Source of the DNA: Gekko japonicus
Lineage: Eukaryota
Assembly: GCF_001447785.1 (NCBI RefSeq)
Contig: NW_015164185.1
Location: 689,002 to 753,001 of the forward strand
Direction: 5' to 3'
DNA length: 64,000 bases
Shown: positions 24,462-32,288 of the stretch, piece after piece
Numbering within the stretch: the first letter of the stretch is position 1
How the letters are laid out: each line of letters opens with the position of its first letter
The notes under the pieces: generated by a model
The model's input: only the letters and a program-made list of their open reading frames with translations
What the model was told of the DNA's origin: nothing
Database searches by the model: none
Program-made: the position numbers and the translations under genes

Positions 24462-24586
24462 CAGGGCTCTTTTTGTAGCAGGAACTCCTTTGCATATTAG
24501 GTGACACACCCCTAATGTAGCCAATCTTCCAAGAGCTTACAGCTTGTAAAAAGAGCTCTGTAAGCTCTTGGAGGATTGGCTATATT
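24462..24586. mobile_element. Left part of a palindromic hAT-like MITE split by the Ngaro element
   Basis: cagggctctttttgtagcaggaactcctttgcatattaggtgacacacccctaat is the inverted repeat of 32233-32288. Confidence 0.8.
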
Positions 24587-24982
24587 GCCCCCCAAGATGG
24601 AATAATGAGGCAGACACCAATGATGGGTTTAACTATTGGGCCACTTTATTAACTGACAACTTTAACTGGAACTAACGGCAAGGGCAACACATTTTGTGGT
24701 ATGGTCAAGGCCAGGGGTCAATGACCCCTCCCTTACCTCATGAAATAGGGCAAGCCACCCTGCCCCACGTGGAAGCCATCAGCAGTGGCTCCCACCCGGC
24801 TGGCTAGCCATTGCAGGACAACCTTGTAGGCCCATCCTCCAAGCCGCTAGTCTCAAAGGGAGGCACAAAGACTGTACTCACAGGACCCCTTCAACCCCAA
24901 ATAATGAGTGTCAGCTGGTGCTCACCAGACCGCAATCTGTATACTGCATAGAAACCTGCCACCGCTGAGGCCAAGCCTCTGC

Positions 24983-25567
24983 TTAGGCCTTCGCACCCAT
25001 TGGGAGGCCCAAGGCCCCCTGAAGCCCTTGCCATAAATCCTCCAGAAAGATGTCCATGCCCATTTCTGACAGGTGGATACCATCCTGCCTGTAGAACTCT
25101 GCACACCCCACATGTATGATCGGGTGCGGCAAAAAGATACCCAAACCACCCTCAAGAATCCTATGCAACTCTCTATTCGCCTTACGGTGAGCCTTGTCAA
25201 TGGCCAGCAGATTTACCACCCCCTGCCAAACCCGGCAGGGTATCATAGCTGACCAGCCACTGCCTGAATATAAACTGAAAATCCTCATGGGCCTGAAGGA
25301 TTAATGCCTTTCCTTTGATCAGGCCTAAATCATGGCCTTCTAAATGGATAACTACAACCTGAGGCAGAGGGCCAACCCTCTCATGAAACAACAACTGCAA
25401 AAGGCCCAGCCACTGTAAGCCCCAGCGCCCTTGCCATTCAACAGTGGTCCACTGGCTAAGGTCCAGCTGCGTAACAATCAGCGTCCTCCTGGTGCGATGA
25501 GCCGCCCCAAAAACAAAACCGTGCCTGCAGATTAAAACAGTCTTCCTCTCCTGCTGGCAAATCAAAT
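24983..25567 (-). pseudogene. SGNH/GDSL-like hydrolase ORF of Ngaro element 1 (one frameshift)
   Basis: Block I-like VLICRHGF, block III-like VVIHLEGHDLG and block V DGIHLS. Homologous to 44858-46122. Confidence 0.8.
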
Positions 25568-25627
25568 CTGAAACAACAAAAACAGTGAGCAGGGGCACAA
25601 ATACACCCACAATGCGGCCACCCAGGC

Positions 25628-26770
25628 CTACCTTCCGTGTCTAGACAAGGGCTGCACATAAGACTTGTATGTCGAGGAACGCCACCTCCCCAGTCACTGA
25701 ATATCGCGTGCTGGGTACCCCATGGCCACTGCTGTGGAAGCAGCTCCAATGTGAAAAGAGTGGGTGCAAAAACGCCTCCCAGCAAGCCCCAGCTTCACTA
25801 AAGCCCTAGTGGTGACCATCAAAAAATGATGTTTTGTTAAGGGGGTGCCATCCTGGTGCTGAAAAAGTAGGCCTGCCCGAATCCCCCTTACTGCCAGGTA
25901 GGCAGCTAAAGCTGCCACGGGACACACCTGCTTCTCAGCACAAGCGCCCAGCTCGACAACTGAACCTCACTGCCACTGTATGATTGGCCAGCCCGTGCGC
26001 CTTGCTGGCATATGCCAAGGCAGACAACAGCCCCTTTATCGAACTAATCGCCAAACCCTTACCTTTTGATGCCACACAAAAATGCAAAAGGTGCTCCACA
26101 GGAACAGGCCACAACCTAGGATACCCTTTGTTGTTCAGTCGCACAGTCGAGTCCGACTCTTTGTGACCCCATGGACAAGATCACGCCAGTCCCTCCTGTC
26201 TTCCGCCGTCCTCTGAAGTTGGCTCAATTTCATGTTCGTTGCATCTATGACACTGTCTAACCATCTCATCCTTTGCCATCCCCATCTTCTTTGACCTTCA
26301 ATCTTTCCCAGCATCACGGTCTTCTCCAGTGAGTGCTCACTTCTCATTTGGTGGCCAAAGTATTTGAGCTTCAGTTTCATTATCTGGCCTTCCAGGGAAC
26401 AGTCAGGGTTGATTACTTTTAGGATTGACTGATTTGATCTTCTTGCAGTCCAAGGGACTCTCAAGAGTCTTCTCCAGCACCATAGTTCAAAAGAATCTAT
26501 TCTTCGGTGCTCGGCCTTCCTTATAGTCCAACTCTCGCAGCCATACATGACTACTGGGAATACCATTGCTTTGACCATGCGGACTTTTGTTGGCAGGGTG
26601 ATGTCTCTACTTTTTATCTTGCTGTTTAGGTAGGATACCCTACCTCCTGTCTAAATTCCGAGAACTGGGTGACCACCCGGTCATAAGCCTGTTTGGTGTT
26701 TGGCACTATGGCTAGTCCTATTGCCCCACACACTTCTGCCTTCCAACCAAACATAGCCCCGGTGGCATCC
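25628..26770 (-). pseudogene. Tyrosine recombinase ORF of element 1 (BovB insertion and internal deletion)
   Basis: WPVPVEHLLHFC, CPVAALAAYL, THSFHIGAASTA (HSFRIGAA-like) and GRWRSSTYKSY. Confidence 0.85.
26128..26630 (-). mobile_element. Young 5'-truncated RTE-BovB LINE nested in the YR ORF
   Basis: Open frame VKAMVFPVVMYGCESWTIRKAE...GVTKSRTRL, (caa)n tail, perfect 11-bp TSD TAGGATACCCT (26117-26127, 26631-26641). Confidence 0.95.
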
Positions 26771-29500
26771 ATACCGGCTGGGAGTCAGTGTCTCGGGCCA
26801 GCTAATGGAACCTCTCCATCTGTTTACGAGAGAGAGCATCAGCCACCCCATTGTCAACCCCCGGCACGTGCCGGGCAAAAAACAAAATATTTAGCTGGAG
26901 GCAACAAAGTGTAAAGGCCCTGACCAGATGCATGACGTGTTGGGATCTGGATGATAGGGAATTGATGACCTGCACAACCGCAAGGTTATCGCACCAAACG
27001 TACACCGTGTGGTTGGCTAACTCCTCCCCCCACAGGTGAACTGCCACTAGGATAGGAAAGAACTCCAGAAAAGTCAGGTCAGTCGTCAGCCCCTCTGCGA
27101 CCCAGGATGCTGGCCACGCTTCAGTGCACCAGCGCCCACGGAAGTAAACACCGAAATCAGAGGACCTGGCTGCATCCGAATGGACCTGAAGTTCTGCTTC
27201 CAATCTAAGATCCTCTCTCCAAAATGAAATGCTGTTGAAAGAGGTGAGATACTCAAAAAGAAAAAAGAGAGAAAGAAAGAGGCGAGAAACTCCAGCCACA
27301 TTTCCAAATCCTGCTGGATGCCAGCGGTGATCCGGATCCTGTAGTGAGGGAGTCGCAGCCCGGTCATCATGGCACACAACCTGCACAAAAAGGCCTGGCC
27401 AGGCACCACCACCTTACATGCAAAATTAAGTTGACCAACCAACTGCTGTAGCTCCCTCAAGGTGACCCTCCATCTGCGTAGAAATTCACTGATTCGACTG
27501 TGCAGGAACGCCAGCTTGCATGCCGGCAGCTGGGAAGCCTGTGCCACCGAATCCAATTCTACCCTCAGGAATGTTAGCACCTGGGCCAGATCTTCAGTCT
27601 TTTCCTGAGCTAAAGGCACCCCCAACTCGCCTGCCAGAGACATGAAAGAACCCAGCAACTGTCCGCACTGTCCAGAACCCTGGGGGCCCATGAACAGAAA
27701 GTCATCCAAATAGTGTGCCACTGTGCTCAACGTGCACAGAGAGCCCACTCCAGAAAGGAGCTAAAGTGCTCAAAAGTGACACAGGAAATGGAGCAGCCCA
27801 TAGGCAGAGCCTGATCTAAATAGAACTGGCCCTCAAAACAAAAACCCAGCAGCTCAGATCCCTCCGGGTGCACTGGGAGAAGGTGAAATGCAGACTTAAT
27901 GTCACATTTCGCCATCTCCGCTCCCCTCCCACAGCGGTGTACAATGTGCACCGCCTGATTGAAGGAAGTGTACCAGACGGAGCACAAAGCCTCAGGAATG
28001 GCATCATTGACTGAACAGCCCTTAGGATAAGAGAGATGATGGATGAGACGGAACTCCCCAGGAGCCCTTTTGGGCACAATACCCAATGGGGACACGTGAA
28101 GGTTGGGGACGGGGGGGGAGGAGAAAGGTCCTAGGACCCTACCCTCCTGCAGTTCCTTGTCAATCTTTTCCCTAACCATGTGCTCCATACCCCCTATGGA
28201 TCATAAGTTACCTGCCATGAAGGGAGCCCTCTCACCCTGGTAAGGTATGTGGAAGCCCTGTGAAAAACCTTTTAAAAAATATAAACTATTGGAACATAAG
28301 CTACATATCTCTATCCCATGGTTCCTCTACCTACAACTCAATCATGTAATATCTACCTTAAAGATTTTCTCTCTTCCTCCTAAAACTGTATTTGAAAACA
28401 TATTAGCTTCTACTGGGACCTCATCAAAAGGATTGATCTCTAAAGTCTACAATATCTTACCAGATCTCCACAGTACAAATGACCTACCATACAGAAATAA
28501 GTGGCAATCAGAGTGCAACCTCATATTCACGGACGAAATCTGGGATCGAGTTTGGTCCTCATCTACACTTAAATCACCAATCATCAGTACGCAGCTACAA
28601 TCATATAAAAGTATAACTCAATGGTACCGAAAACTAGCGTTATCCTCACCAAATTCTTCACCACTCTGTTGGAGGAACTCTGGAAGTATTGGGACTTACG
28701 CCCATTGTTGGTGGGAATGCCCAACTGTTAACTCTTTCTGGCACGAAGTTCTCACTCAGATTAAAATTATTACGGGCTATGAAGTCCCCCTGAAACCAGA
28801 AATACTTTTTCTCAACATCTGGCAAGATATCCAAATACCATCGATTCGGAAAGACCTCATATCTAGCTTAATAGTTGCAGCAAGATCCTGCATAGCCTCC
28901 AGATGGAAGTCCCATCTCACCCCCACAATTGAGCTATGGTTTACAAAAGTCTGGGATTTTTTTATTCTAGAAAAAATTACAGACCAAGTCCGGTGTACAG
29001 ATCAATTTCCTAAGATGACCTCATTCTCTGCGAAATGGCTGCCCTTCTTTAACAAAATAACGGAAGAAAAATATTCAAACCATAAACATATATTACACTA
29101 GTTGTGTGCCACTAAGCTAAGCAATACTCCAGATAGAATTACCCTATAACACATCTAAGTTAGCACTATTTAGTTAATCTCTTGTTGTACAAGAAGTATA
29201 ATGTTCTATGTGTTCCAAAAGTTGTATTGATACCTACAACACTTGTTACTCTTGTAATACTCTCCACCAGACTTGGAAATTTTGAATGTTGCTGTTTTAT
29301 AAAGCTGTATTCATTTATAAAAAATATTAATAAAAAAGTTCATGAGAAAAAATATATAAAATATTGGAACATTGAGGATAACTATGTAACAGCAACTCAA
29401 ACACTCTCAACCTTATGGGCATTGGCCCCCTTTCCATGCACCTGCCCAGATCCACCCCCCTCTGGCCTTCTGCAACCTTTACGGGGCTTTCCATGGAAGC
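26760..29500 (-). pseudogene. RT/RNase H (pol) ORF of element 1, interrupted
   Basis: SPLGIVPK..FRLIHHLSYP, AKCDIKSAF, LPMG, HYLDDFLF, HSDAA, WCDN, HVPGVDNGVADALSR. Confidence 0.9.
28298..29346 (+). mobile_element. 5'-truncated L1 (ORF2 C-terminus and 3'UTR) nested in Ngaro pol, antisense to it
   Basis: Open frame to 29101 with zinc-knuckle-like CWRN..GTYAHCWWECP, AATAAA near 29329, TTTT/AA target site, ~24-bp degenerate TSD aaaaaatata..tattggaacat (28274-28297, 29347-29372). Confidence 0.85.
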
Positions 29501-31039
29501 ATGCTGAGAAGGGGTGCGGGCCCGCGCACAAGGGGCATTCATGTCGATACTGGCATGCCTTATGGTTACACACTCCTTGGGCCCCAAATTCCCAGCAAAT
29601 CTGGCAGGGTTGAACCACCTGCCCCACCTGAGGGCAGGGACCAGAGGACATGGTCAAATGCTGGACTAGATGGCCGCTGTGTGATCGATCCCCCATGTTT
29701 GGCCTGGAAGAGGCCATAACCTGCAGCCAAAGCTGGGGGTGGATCTGATCCCAATGCAAGGAAGGGTTCATGGCAGCACACATCCTGAACTCCTTGTCAT
29801 ATTGGAGCCAGGTGGGGCTGGTAAAACTGGTATAGCCCTTGTAAATTATGTCAAAATATTGGAACAGTGATACTGACCAGCATGGTTGTGCTTTAGAAAA
29901 CACACCGGCATATATAAGGAAACCTGCCACCCAGTTGGCCCAGGTTCTATCTACCTTCATCTTCCTATACTTTTCCTTGTCCCTATCCTCAAGCTCTTCC
30001 TTCTCCTTCCTTTCCAGTTCCCAGAACAGAAGTGTAAAAACATTCATGTATTTTCGCCACCCAGTTGGCCCAGGTTCTATCTACCTTCATCTTCCTATAC
30101 TTTTCCTTGTCCCTATCCTCAAGCTCTTCCTTCTCCTTCCTTTCCAGTTCCCAGAACAGAAGTGTAAAAACATTCATGTATTTTCCCCTGCAATTTTTCC
30201 CCCTAGTGGCAGGTAGCAGGTGGTCACCTAATGGGAGTGCCAAATCCCCAAAGGGGAGGCCAGTGGTGGGAGCCACTGCGTATGATACACCGCAAGGCGA
30301 TGGACCACTCCACCATGGTGTGCCAGACATGCTGCAGTGCTGTGCAGATGCAGCATTACAAAAAGACTGAGGGGTGCAGATGATAAAGCAGTGCCACATG
30401 TCTGACCACAGGACAGATCTGCAGGACAGATACTGAGCCTCTAGCAGCAGGTTGGCCCCAGGGCCAACTGCCTACAGTGTGGTGCATTCCACACTTACTT
30501 GCCTCTGTGGAAGGGCCAGCCTGGGCGCCAGTCGGGCGTTGCTGCTCTGAAGCTATTGATTCAGGAGGTGTGCCAATGTTCTGACTCACAGAGGCCCCAT
30601 CCTTGCTTGCCCCATGTGTGGCAGTGTGCCCTGCTGCCGCGGAAGGGCCAGCCAGGGCATTGGTCGGGCATTGCTGCTCTGAAGCCATCAATGTAGAAGG
30701 TGCACCCAGGTCCTGATCCATGGAGGTCCCATCTGTGCTTGCCATATGATTGGCAGTGCGCCCTTCAACAAGAGACAAATGAGTTAAAACCTCCAGTTGA
30801 AAACGCTTATTGGCAGCAGAGCGTCTTTCTTTACACCCCCGTGCTCCACCTCCAGGCCTAGCACAAGGGAGTGATACTCCTGTGGCCTGCTCAACAGCCT
30901 TCAACTGATCCAGAATAGCCTGCTGCACCTCATTGTCCTCATCATCCGTAGAGGACAGGGCAGGAGTGGGCCATTTAGGGGGTGGCTTGGATGCTGGCTG
31001 TTTTCCCTTAGAATGGCCAGAGCCTTTTTTGGGAGCCAT
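29397..31039 (-). pseudogene. gag-like ORF1 of element 1
   Basis: Basic N-terminus MAPKKGSG, acidic/helical segment, PFGDLALPLGDHL, RTWANW, WLQYD.EFR and C-terminal CWEF..C...C.YRHECPLCAGPH zinc finger. Homologous to element 2 gag. Confidence 0.85.
29926..30185. repeat. Apparently perfect 130-bp tandem duplication inside gag
   Basis: 29926-30055 is repeated at 30056-30185. Confidence 0.95.
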
Positions 31040-32232
31040 GCTAATACCTCTATTGACCAGCAAGCAGGGCAAGGAACACCCCCCCCCCCCGCCGCCAACA
31101 GGCAGTTGCATAGCTGCTTGCACCAATAACTGCAGGAGCTAGGATTAAAAAGTAGCCAACCGGAGCTAGGTAACAAAATGGCCGGCCTGAGCCAGTGTTT
31201 AAAATGGCTGACCAGAACTGGCCACAAATTGGCTGACCAGTCCCAGACCAAAATGGCCGTTTGAACAAGGGCAACCACTTGCCTCCTCCACCCCAGTGGA
31301 TAGCCACCTGGCCACCCAATGAGACCAGACAGGCTGCTTACCTATCACAGACCCAGCCAAGCTGCCCCCAGAACACACTGGGGGGGGGGAAAGGAGTGGA
31401 GAGGGGGAAAGGCCAAGAAGATAGGGCTGCCGACCGAAAGACCCCCTATGAATGCAGGCTGCAAGCCACTACAACAGGCCCATTCCACCCGCAGCCCCAC
31501 CCCAGAGGGGGGCCCAGTCTGCACTACCCCCCCAGGCACAAATCCCGCACTCTTGCCACTGCCTCAGAGCTCCTCACTCCTCTTGATGACTGGCCTTCAC
31601 CCACCGCCAGGCGTGCTGAAATACTGGCACCCAACCCAGCTACTGTGCCAGAAAACGGGCCCACCACCACCCACTGCACACTCCCTGCTGCCCCAGGCAA
31701 GCACTACTGAGAAGCCCCAATATGCTGCCACCGCCTAGCCTCTGTGCTGCTCAATGCTGCAGGGACCCGACTGGCCCCCTTACCATCACTGCATCTGCCG
31801 CGGTGAGCCTCTGGGCCAGTCCACATTGCCGAGGCCCAACCGACCCCGCCACCACATCAGCCACTGCACTGACGCTCCGCTCCCACAGGCACCGCAAGTC
31901 CCACCACCGCCAATCCACCGCTAATCCACCGCCAAGGAGGCCACACCCAGGCAGGCCAGCCGTCAGCCTGAAAAGGAGTTCCCACCATGCAGCCTGCCGA
32001 GCAGGTAGGTCCAAAAAGAAGGCACGCTGCGGAGCTCCTTGCCAGCTGAAGACCAAACGGTACTGCTGGCAAGGAGAGGAGGGGCCGGGGTTTTAAGCCA
32101 CTTGGCCCCTCCCACCTAGAATACCCGTATGAGGTGCTTTTGGTGCCTCAATTGGGGCCCGCCTCATCCGGCTGGGAGACAAAGGTGTCTCCCCAGCCCA
32201 ATGGCTGCAAGGGCCAAGGGCTGTTTGAAACG

Positions 32233-32288
32233 TATTAGGGGTGTGTCACCTAATATGAAAAGGAGCTCCTGCTACAAAAAGAGCCCTG
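32233..32288. mobile_element. Right part of the MITE split by element 1
   Basis: attaggggtgtgtcacctaatatgaaaaggagctcctgctacaaaaagagccctg, inverted repeat of 24462-24515. Confidence 0.8.

Follow-up and report, generated by a model that had tools for sequence, protein, structure and literature searches.

Ngaro elements in the window

The stretch of DNA analysed here, called the window throughout, comprises 64,000 nucleotides (nt) of the genome of Gekko japonicus (contig NW_015164185.1, positions 689,002 to 753,001) and contains two copies of a retrotransposon of the Ngaro type, designated element 1 and element 2 (Table 1). Besides gag and a region for reverse transcriptase and RNase H (RT/RH) they include a gene for a tyrosine recombinase (YR) and, behind it, one for an esterase of the SGNH family. 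This report deals with a 5' splice site (donor) in gag and a 3' splice site (acceptor) directly ahead of the esterase gene, which together would join an N-terminal part of Gag (Gag-N) in frame to the esterase. All positions refer to the window.

The combination of RT/RNase H with a tyrosine recombinase and without an integrase, by which Ngaro elements are recognised, was found in element 1. The collinear maps also display the order gag, RT/RH, YR with an SGNH open reading frame (ORF) after YR and without a methyltransferase. This gene order agrees with the Ngaro description in PMC9210276. Both copies are collinear at the protein level and share about 65% DNA identity, where they can be aligned at all. 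Gecko Gag, YR and fusion proteins match element 1 in tblastn searches (E 7e-30 for the YR protein P0166), and P0166 itself exceeds the threshold of Pfam Phage_int_SAM_1 and is a recombinase. A Pfam search with the window's own ORFs returned a single weak match (RVT_1, E 7.5e-4), which lies below the Pfam cut-off. Split direct repeats (A1 ... B1 A2 B2) above chance level were not found between the 5' and 3' ends of element 1, an old copy in which they may have decayed. Element 1 is a fossil with two nested fragments of long interspersed nuclear elements (LINEs), a frameshift, a lost catalytic serine and almost no RNA.

Table 1. Features of the two Ngaro elements and their surroundings (window positions)
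Feature	Position	Strand	Remarks
Ngaro element 1, decayed copy, ends approximate	24587..32233	-	gag, RT/RNase H, YR, SGNH esterase in that order
Exon 1 (predicted), Gag N-terminal leader	30499..31039	-	ATG at 31039, 180 open codons plus first base of split codon
Putative 5' splice site CAA/GTAAGT, phase 1	30493..30501	-	intron start 30498; context GAG GCA A/GT AAG T
WPWG motif of Gag (position anchor)	30455..30466	-	11 codons past the split codon
Predicted intron of the Gag-N::SGNH message	25568..30498	-	4931 nt; holds remaining gag, RT/RH, YR and two nested LINE fragments
Putative 3' splice site of the esterase message	25568..25592	-	branch-like CTCAC (A at 25586, 18 nt from AG), pyrimidine tract, CAG; phase 1
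Exon 2 (predicted), SGNH esterase	24983..25567	-	two ORF pieces, 25197..25610 and 24983..25288; stop at 24983-24985
Putative recombinase acceptor of element 1, GATGCTCTCTCTCGTAAACAG/ATGG	26820..26840	-	exon start 26819, phase 1
Ngaro element 2, second window copy	40.9-46.2 kb	+	
Putative donor of element 2, GTG/GTAAGG, phase 1	41405..41413	+	intron start 41408; 12 codons before WPWG
Putative recombinase acceptor of element 2, GATGCTCTCTCTCGCCAACAG/ATGG	43814..43834	+	exon start 43835
Putative esterase acceptor of element 2, TTCACtgtcttctctttcCAG	44837..44857	+	TTCAC, pyrimidine tract, CAG; exon start 44858; phase 1
Nested BovB/RTE-like LINE tail in the recombinase gene	26128..26631	-	ORF 26135..26578; collinearity gap relative to element 2
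Nested L1-like fragment between gag and RT	28287..29395	+	ORF 28247..29101; collinearity gap relative to element 2
Inverted arms flanking element 1, 55 nt	24462-24516 and 32234-32288		

Splice signals in both copies

The original prediction, made from the DNA alone, had placed a phase-1 donor in gag of element 1, and this donor is present as described. It is in phase 1 because the codon starts of the gag ORF (30356..31126) are congruent to 1 modulo 3, so that the last exon base (30499) is the first base of a codon. About 180 Gag codons had been expected in front of it, and 180 open codons plus one base were counted. The distance to the WPWG motif, given before as about ten codons, is correct as to position and comes exactly to eleven from the split codon, as it does in the gecko Gag protein P0168; in element 2 it amounts to 12. 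Translated exon 1 is 40% identical over 95 amino acids (E 1e-13) to the N-terminus of P0004, a Gag-N::SGNH fusion protein from another gecko.

The acceptor, which had been predicted to end at 25568 directly before the SGNH ORF in phase 1, was likewise found with the reading frame as written. It reads gCTCACtgtttttgttgtttCAG/ATTTGATT in element 1; the split codon, A+AT, would encode N, and LICQQERKTVLICRH would come next in the reading frame of ORF 25197..25610. The acceptor lies 13 codons ahead of the ICxH block in both elements alike, and an in-frame ATG between the upstream stop and esterase block I is found in neither window copy. Element 1 has donor, acceptor, pyrimidine tract, branch-like motif and compatible phase, as they belong to a GT-AG intron. 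Of the roughly 195 hydrolase codons announced for exon 2 the esterase itself was recovered, but not as one open frame, as a frameshift near 25255-25260 splits it ahead of block III. A phase-1 pair with the same position and branch-point-like motif is also present in element 2, as had been claimed for these two diverged copies.

By an approximate splice position weight matrix, which is a rough ruler, the donor ranks 5th among 488 GT sites in element 1 and 5th among 336 in element 2, and the esterase acceptor 4th among 590 and 1st among 426 AG sites, respectively. For comparison with chance, sequences of the Gag-N region and of the spacer between YR and SGNH were shuffled as first-order Markov chains (5000 shuffles for element 1). 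Open pairs with matching phase that were no worse than the observed one arose in a fraction of 0.0002-0.001 of the shuffles of element 1 and of 0.004 of those of element 2. At the esterase acceptor 17 of 25 positions (68%) are identical between the elements, compared with 39% in the 88 nt upstream and 36% in the first 25 nt of exon 2; the acceptor is an island of conservation. The DNA around the donor is essentially unalignable (37% identity); even so, both elements retain GTAAG, at distances from WPWG that differ by no more than one codon.

Gag-N::esterase fusion proteins in other squamates

The two exons were used one at a time in all searches and comparisons. A profile of exon 2 built from two rows (both elements) and run against 1.84 billion representative proteins detected 552 relatives, many of which have 130-250 residues ahead of the esterase domain. 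These N-termini read MPPKKGxGxSKGKxPAKRP..SSDEE..ILAKLxALE..VLxRLSxLE, which is the same leader as in the gag ORF of element 1. Among the best 150 of the 552 relatives at least 15 clusters combine Gag-N and SGNH, with a mutual identity of no more than 50% (phmmer with leaders), and this is the commonest architecture among annotated relatives. Most of the fusion clusters are RefSeq models from Heteronotia binoei, Eublepharis macularius, Anolis sagrei, Elgaria multicarinata, Hemicordylus capensis, Rhineura floridana and Pogona vitticeps; many of the models are numbered isoforms, and they occur at several loci per genome. One further fusion, P0089, is a contiguous ORF of 394 amino acids on a Logan contig of 1677 nt and represents an intron-less form. 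When the decayed esterase piece of element 1 served as query, a word-index search of proteins gave no match; all relatives came from the full hidden Markov model search.

Two proteins of Eublepharis locate the junction at the level of single codons. Up to and including ...AEEPPVAVVVDQPEGDG, which ends with PEGDG, the fusion P0004 does not differ from the full Gag protein P0168. From there P0168 continues with KPPAPHASYTWPWG, where G-K is the product of G/GT AAG and a W follows 11 codons on as in element 1, and P0004 continues with AVVRRGRCRILICGHS, where the distance between the split codon and ILIC is ten residues, just as it is in the two elements of the window. The gecko junction thus falls where the window donor and acceptor predict. 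Six more squamate fusions (P0002, P0011, P0018, P0019, P0023 and P0030), read by eye, have G, A or D ten places before the xLIC strand. The codon at the junction therefore begins with G, as expected if the last base of exon 1 is G. Neither random phase nor a missing acceptor before SGNH, either of which would have spoken against the original prediction, was encountered elsewhere: these six squamate fusions and an isoform pair from a frog (see below) fit phase 1. The at least 15 fusion clusters in seven squamate species, together with the gecko junction, support its proposal that the splice architecture was inherited under selection and is not a product of chance.

In three relatives (P0013, P0014 and P0035) the SGNH domain of this family stands behind unrelated host-like N-termini, for example in a model of 1429 amino acids from Elgaria named 'zinc finger protein 318-like'. 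These may be cases of exonisation through the strong esterase acceptor or annotation chimeras.

A putative second acceptor for the recombinase

The same donor can be paired with a further acceptor. The sequence CTCTCTCTCG..AACAG/ATGG is kept in both window elements, 15 nt ahead of the RT/RH stop. Two gecko proteins, the SGNH fusion P0165 and the YR protein P0166, have a common leader through ...VEPE. Past this point P0165 reads G+AVVRR..ILICGHS, and P0166 reads D+GALSPACTRRR.. and runs into the recombinase. The exchange of G for D at the junction is what is expected from G/GN versus G/AT, and the junction of P0166 (D139) maps to the recombinase acceptor of element 1. With both acceptors in both window elements and one leader in P0165 and P0166, the arrangement of one 5' donor and several downstream acceptors resembles that of retroviruses. 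The conservation of this second acceptor is not creditable to splicing alone because the region is conserved coding sequence (88%). In the gecko YR frame no Met precedes the SAM-like domain, so the recombinase would need the gag AUG too.

A further donor-like motif, CCG/GTAAG, located 45 nt past the YR acceptor, was considered as the start of a second intron and rejected: the gecko protein reads through it, and element 1 is in frame there, one stop aside. Three-exon isoforms composed of the leader, an N-terminal recombinase cassette and the esterase were seen in Rhineura, Hemicordylus and Pseudophryne (P0157, P0163 and P0172, respectively). They would therefore use an extra donor inside the recombinase gene, joined to the same esterase acceptor.

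The esterase domain

In the AlphaFold model of P0004 the leader forms helices at residues 33-52 and 74-95. It is followed by a disordered linker (98-140), into which the junction falls, and by an SGNH domain (146-333) with a predicted local distance difference test score (pLDDT) above 93, the junction being situated just before the first strand of this domain. A sequence search of the PDB with P0004 gave nothing useful. Foldseek returned 149 PDB matches of the SGNH domain with an E-value of at most 0.001, headed by hydrolases of the platelet-activating factor acetylhydrolase (PAF-AH) type and GDSL hydrolases; the best ones (1wab, 3dt6 and 2hsj) had E-values of 7e-8 to 1e-6 and a probability of 1.00. 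The three-layer alpha/beta/alpha fold of SGNH proteins is thereby seen in the model of this relative. In Pfam the domain scores just below the cut-off of Lipase_GDSL_2 (32.3 versus 32.9 bits).

Among 28 proteins from squamates and amphibians the catalytic Ser, Gly-Asn-Asp and Asp-x-x-His vary little or not at all, with GHS, GGND and DGVHL retained. It follows that the esterase has been under selection. Element 1 lacks the full set of SGNH/GDSL catalytic blocks, as block I reads RHG in place of the GHS of intact relatives and the frameshift precedes block III. Its esterase is a dead SGNH member by descent and not a working enzyme. PAF acetylhydrolase Ib catalytic subunits and bacterial SGNH acylhydrolases have the same fold, and their Ser, Gly-Asn and Asp-x-x-His blocks are conserved in the Ngaro esterase. 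Identity to these proteins amounts to only 14-21%, and the Ngaro domain differs from them in being fused to a Gag leader and borne by a transposon.

Both dead window copies have ICRH (AGG and AGA as Arg codons, 25525-25536 and 44891-44902), whereas every intact relative has ICGH; this fits parallel CpG decay from TGC/GGN to TGC/AGN. The esterase gene of element 2 is interrupted by about 790 nt at 45157-45945 that have no counterpart in element 1. A complex prediction for two copies of the P0004 Gag-N leader (residues 1-100) had a score of 0.04 and left the fold uncertain.

Amphibian relatives

Long N-terminal extensions before SGNH also occur in protein models of seven frog species and one caecilian. 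Two isoforms from Pseudophryne, P0135 and P0172, differ by the N-terminal YR cassette. Their junction codons have G/D on the 5' side and G/S on the SGNH side, which is the phase-1 pattern. Local blastp of the frog leader against long polyprotein-like matches revealed no link. A word search with residues 1-315 of P0170 returned two relatives only, both of them SGNH fusions. Neither search showed the frog leader to be Gag. We consider the chances about even that the splicing programme of vertebrate Ngaro elements is older than the split between amphibians and amniotes, that both enzymes were made only as Gag-N fusions, and that this tag may load them into the particle.

Proposed expression strategy and alternative explanations

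Element 1 is a dead copy of a squamate Ngaro retrotransposon, and we propose that its ancestors, in the manner of retroviruses, would have expressed their downstream genes from spliced subgenomic messages. The full-length RNA would serve gag and RT/RNase H. A single phase-1 donor, positioned in the disordered Gag linker 11 codons before WPWG, would have two alternative partners: with the acceptor where the RNase H region ends it would yield Gag-N::recombinase, and with the acceptor 13 codons ahead of the SGNH catalytic block it would yield Gag-N::esterase. In both cases the gag AUG and some 130-210 Gag-N codons would supply initiation, because both downstream frames lack a start codon ahead of their conserved domains. 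We infer that the annotated fusion models rest on real spliced RNA. It is a matter of speculation that the enzymes are carried into the Gag/RNA particle by the Gag-N leader, which has two helices, a basic patch and an acidic patch. That element 1 is the fossil of such a retrovirus-like splicing system, with one gag donor feeding the recombinase and the esterase acceptor, has in our estimate a probability of roughly 85%.

Several observations count against this interpretation. The splice position weight matrix behind the ranks is approximate. GTAAG lies within coding sequence (codons xGT AAG) and may have been retained in part through constraint on the protein. The two window copies have a common ancestry and are not independent trials; because of this, ranks, shuffles and the conservation island alone are no proof of function. 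All but one (P0089) of the fusions looked up by source are computed gene models. Finally, three raw RNA-seq runs and one contig set of Gekko japonicus, aligned over 25300-30700 at 85% likeness, contained no joint from 30498 to 25568; the depth of the Ngaro parts never exceeded 2, and no read covered donor or acceptor. The silence of element 1 is to be expected of so damaged a copy and has no bearing on splicing in active relatives.

From these points one might argue that GT and AG are frequent enough to create splice-like motifs by chance in two related dead copies, with no spliced read to confirm them here, and that the fusions are artefacts of gene prediction in which ORFs of transposable elements were chained together. 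We regard this as very improbable. Shuffled sequences reach the observed quality in a fraction of only 0.0002-0.004; the same junction codon spacing recurs in seven species and in families that are no more than 50% identical; and one leader is joined to two acceptors with the predicted change between G and D. Moreover, the Logan contig carries a contiguous fusion ORF, and an ab initio predictor would need to skip 3-5 kb of long RT and YR ORFs. Of all the accounts weighed, the least probable is that the fusions are domesticated host genes, made of Gag-N and esterase, to which the window copies are merely similar. The conserved catalytic residues would suit such genes, and so would the annotation of the models as ordinary 'uncharacterized protein LOC...', but there are several near-identical loci per genome (six accessions in the P0004 cluster and three loci in Hemicordylus) as well as many divergent families per species, and the 'intron' in the window is the element's own RT/RH/YR body.

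A less extreme alternative accepts the splice sites as usable but minor or cryptic, and has the esterase made mainly by other routes: as a recombinase-esterase fusion, through a short intron that starts at the C-terminus of the recombinase, or from the full-length RNA by reinitiation or frameshifting. Three proteins, P0009 (Gekko, partial), P0047 (Phrynocephalus) and P0118, begin in the recombinase and run into SGNH, which also has to be counted against the proposed strategy. Isoforms with Gag-N, the N-terminal YR cassette and SGNH in Rhineura, Hemicordylus and a frog point in the same direction, as does the Xenopus literature with all four ORFs overlapping. In both window elements, however, the YR and SGNH frames differ and a stop lies between them. 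P0009 passes into SGNH at this acceptor position to within about one codon, every route seen uses this same SGNH acceptor, and Gag-N::SGNH is the commonest form among annotated relatives. On this balance the alternative is improbable.

Comparison with known expression systems

The closest parallel to the proposed strategy is the env subgenomic mRNA of avian leukosis and Rous sarcoma viruses, in which the donor lies inside gag and the gag AUG with the first gag codons is fused to env. Retroviral env messages share with the Ngaro scheme a donor near the 5' end of gag, an acceptor before an ORF without start codon, an in-frame fusion to a Gag leader, and unspliced RNA for gag-pol. They differ in that the Ngaro leader has 130-210 codons instead of six, and that an SGNH esterase and a tyrosine recombinase take the place of the envelope protein. 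In contrast with retroviruses, Ngaro belongs to the DIRS order and has neither long terminal repeats (LTRs) nor an integrase. Spliced subgenomic messages are also known for env of errantiviruses (gypsy-type) and for pol of foamy viruses, where splicing serves a downstream ORF as proposed here; these cases, however, come from retroviruses or LTR elements.

That Ngaro elements can have an SGNH 'hydrolase' ORF behind the recombinase was described by Goodwin and Poulter in 2004, as cited in PMC9210276. To our knowledge this ORF has carried the label 'with no proven function' for twenty years, with no account of its expression, and the recombinase ORF has been described only as overlapping its neighbours. 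A report of splicing in Ngaro or any other tyrosine-recombinase retrotransposon was not found in the literature searched, the original Ngaro papers lying outside that search. Among the elements treated in PMC9210276, DIRS-53_XT and DIRS-54_XT of Xenopus are Ngaro elements with the SGNH 'hydrolase' ORF after the recombinase. They share with element 1 the order gag, RT/RH, YR, SGNH and the same esterase family. The source gives them four overlapping ORFs 'with no proven function', whereas a splice route and a fusion product are proposed here.

If the proposed strategy is correct, it would be the first expression strategy based on splicing that is described for the DIRS order, and it would explain the translation of the 'orphan' hydrolase and of the recombinase ORF that overlaps its neighbours. 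One gag donor shared by two in-frame acceptors makes a concrete expression model, which predicts Gag-N::esterase and Gag-N::recombinase as products and would align the tyrosine-recombinase retrotransposons with the subgenomic-mRNA logic of retroviruses. As regards annotation, hundreds of reptile and frog models named 'uncharacterized protein LOC...' would be splice isoforms of transposons and not host genes.

Further features of element 1

The Gag-N leader of element 1 contains a 132-nt tandem duplication. The leader and linker of Gag seem to tolerate changes in length, and among relatives the leader varies from 130 to 210 amino acids. The duplication (30500-30763) is old and in frame, its copies are 75% identical, and its end is exactly the last full codon ahead of the donor. 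A second tandem duplication in gag (29926-30185), with copies of 130 nt that are 100% identical, causes a frameshift and goes back either to a very recent event or to an error of assembly. In its C-terminal part (29397-30047, minus strand) Gag has a CCCH-type finger followed by a CCHC-like knuckle (CWEFGAQGVCNHKACQYRH ECPLCAGPHPFSAC). Both motifs would be removed by splicing and thus be absent from the fusion proteins.

The inverted arms on either side of element 1 are 96% complementary, and a 29-nt hairpin adjoins one of them (hairpin region 24514-24586). Element 1 appears to sit inside a palindromic element that resembles a miniature inverted-repeat transposable element. As to the two nested LINE fragments, a contig of a relative runs from 28286 straight to 29396 and is free of the L1-like one. 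The BovB/RTE-like tail gave the sole strong RNA signal over 25300-30700, with thousands of reads on both strands, most of them 90-99% alike, and with loose ends that accumulate at 26128 and 26631. Transcripts of Gekko japonicus are rich in this LINE family.

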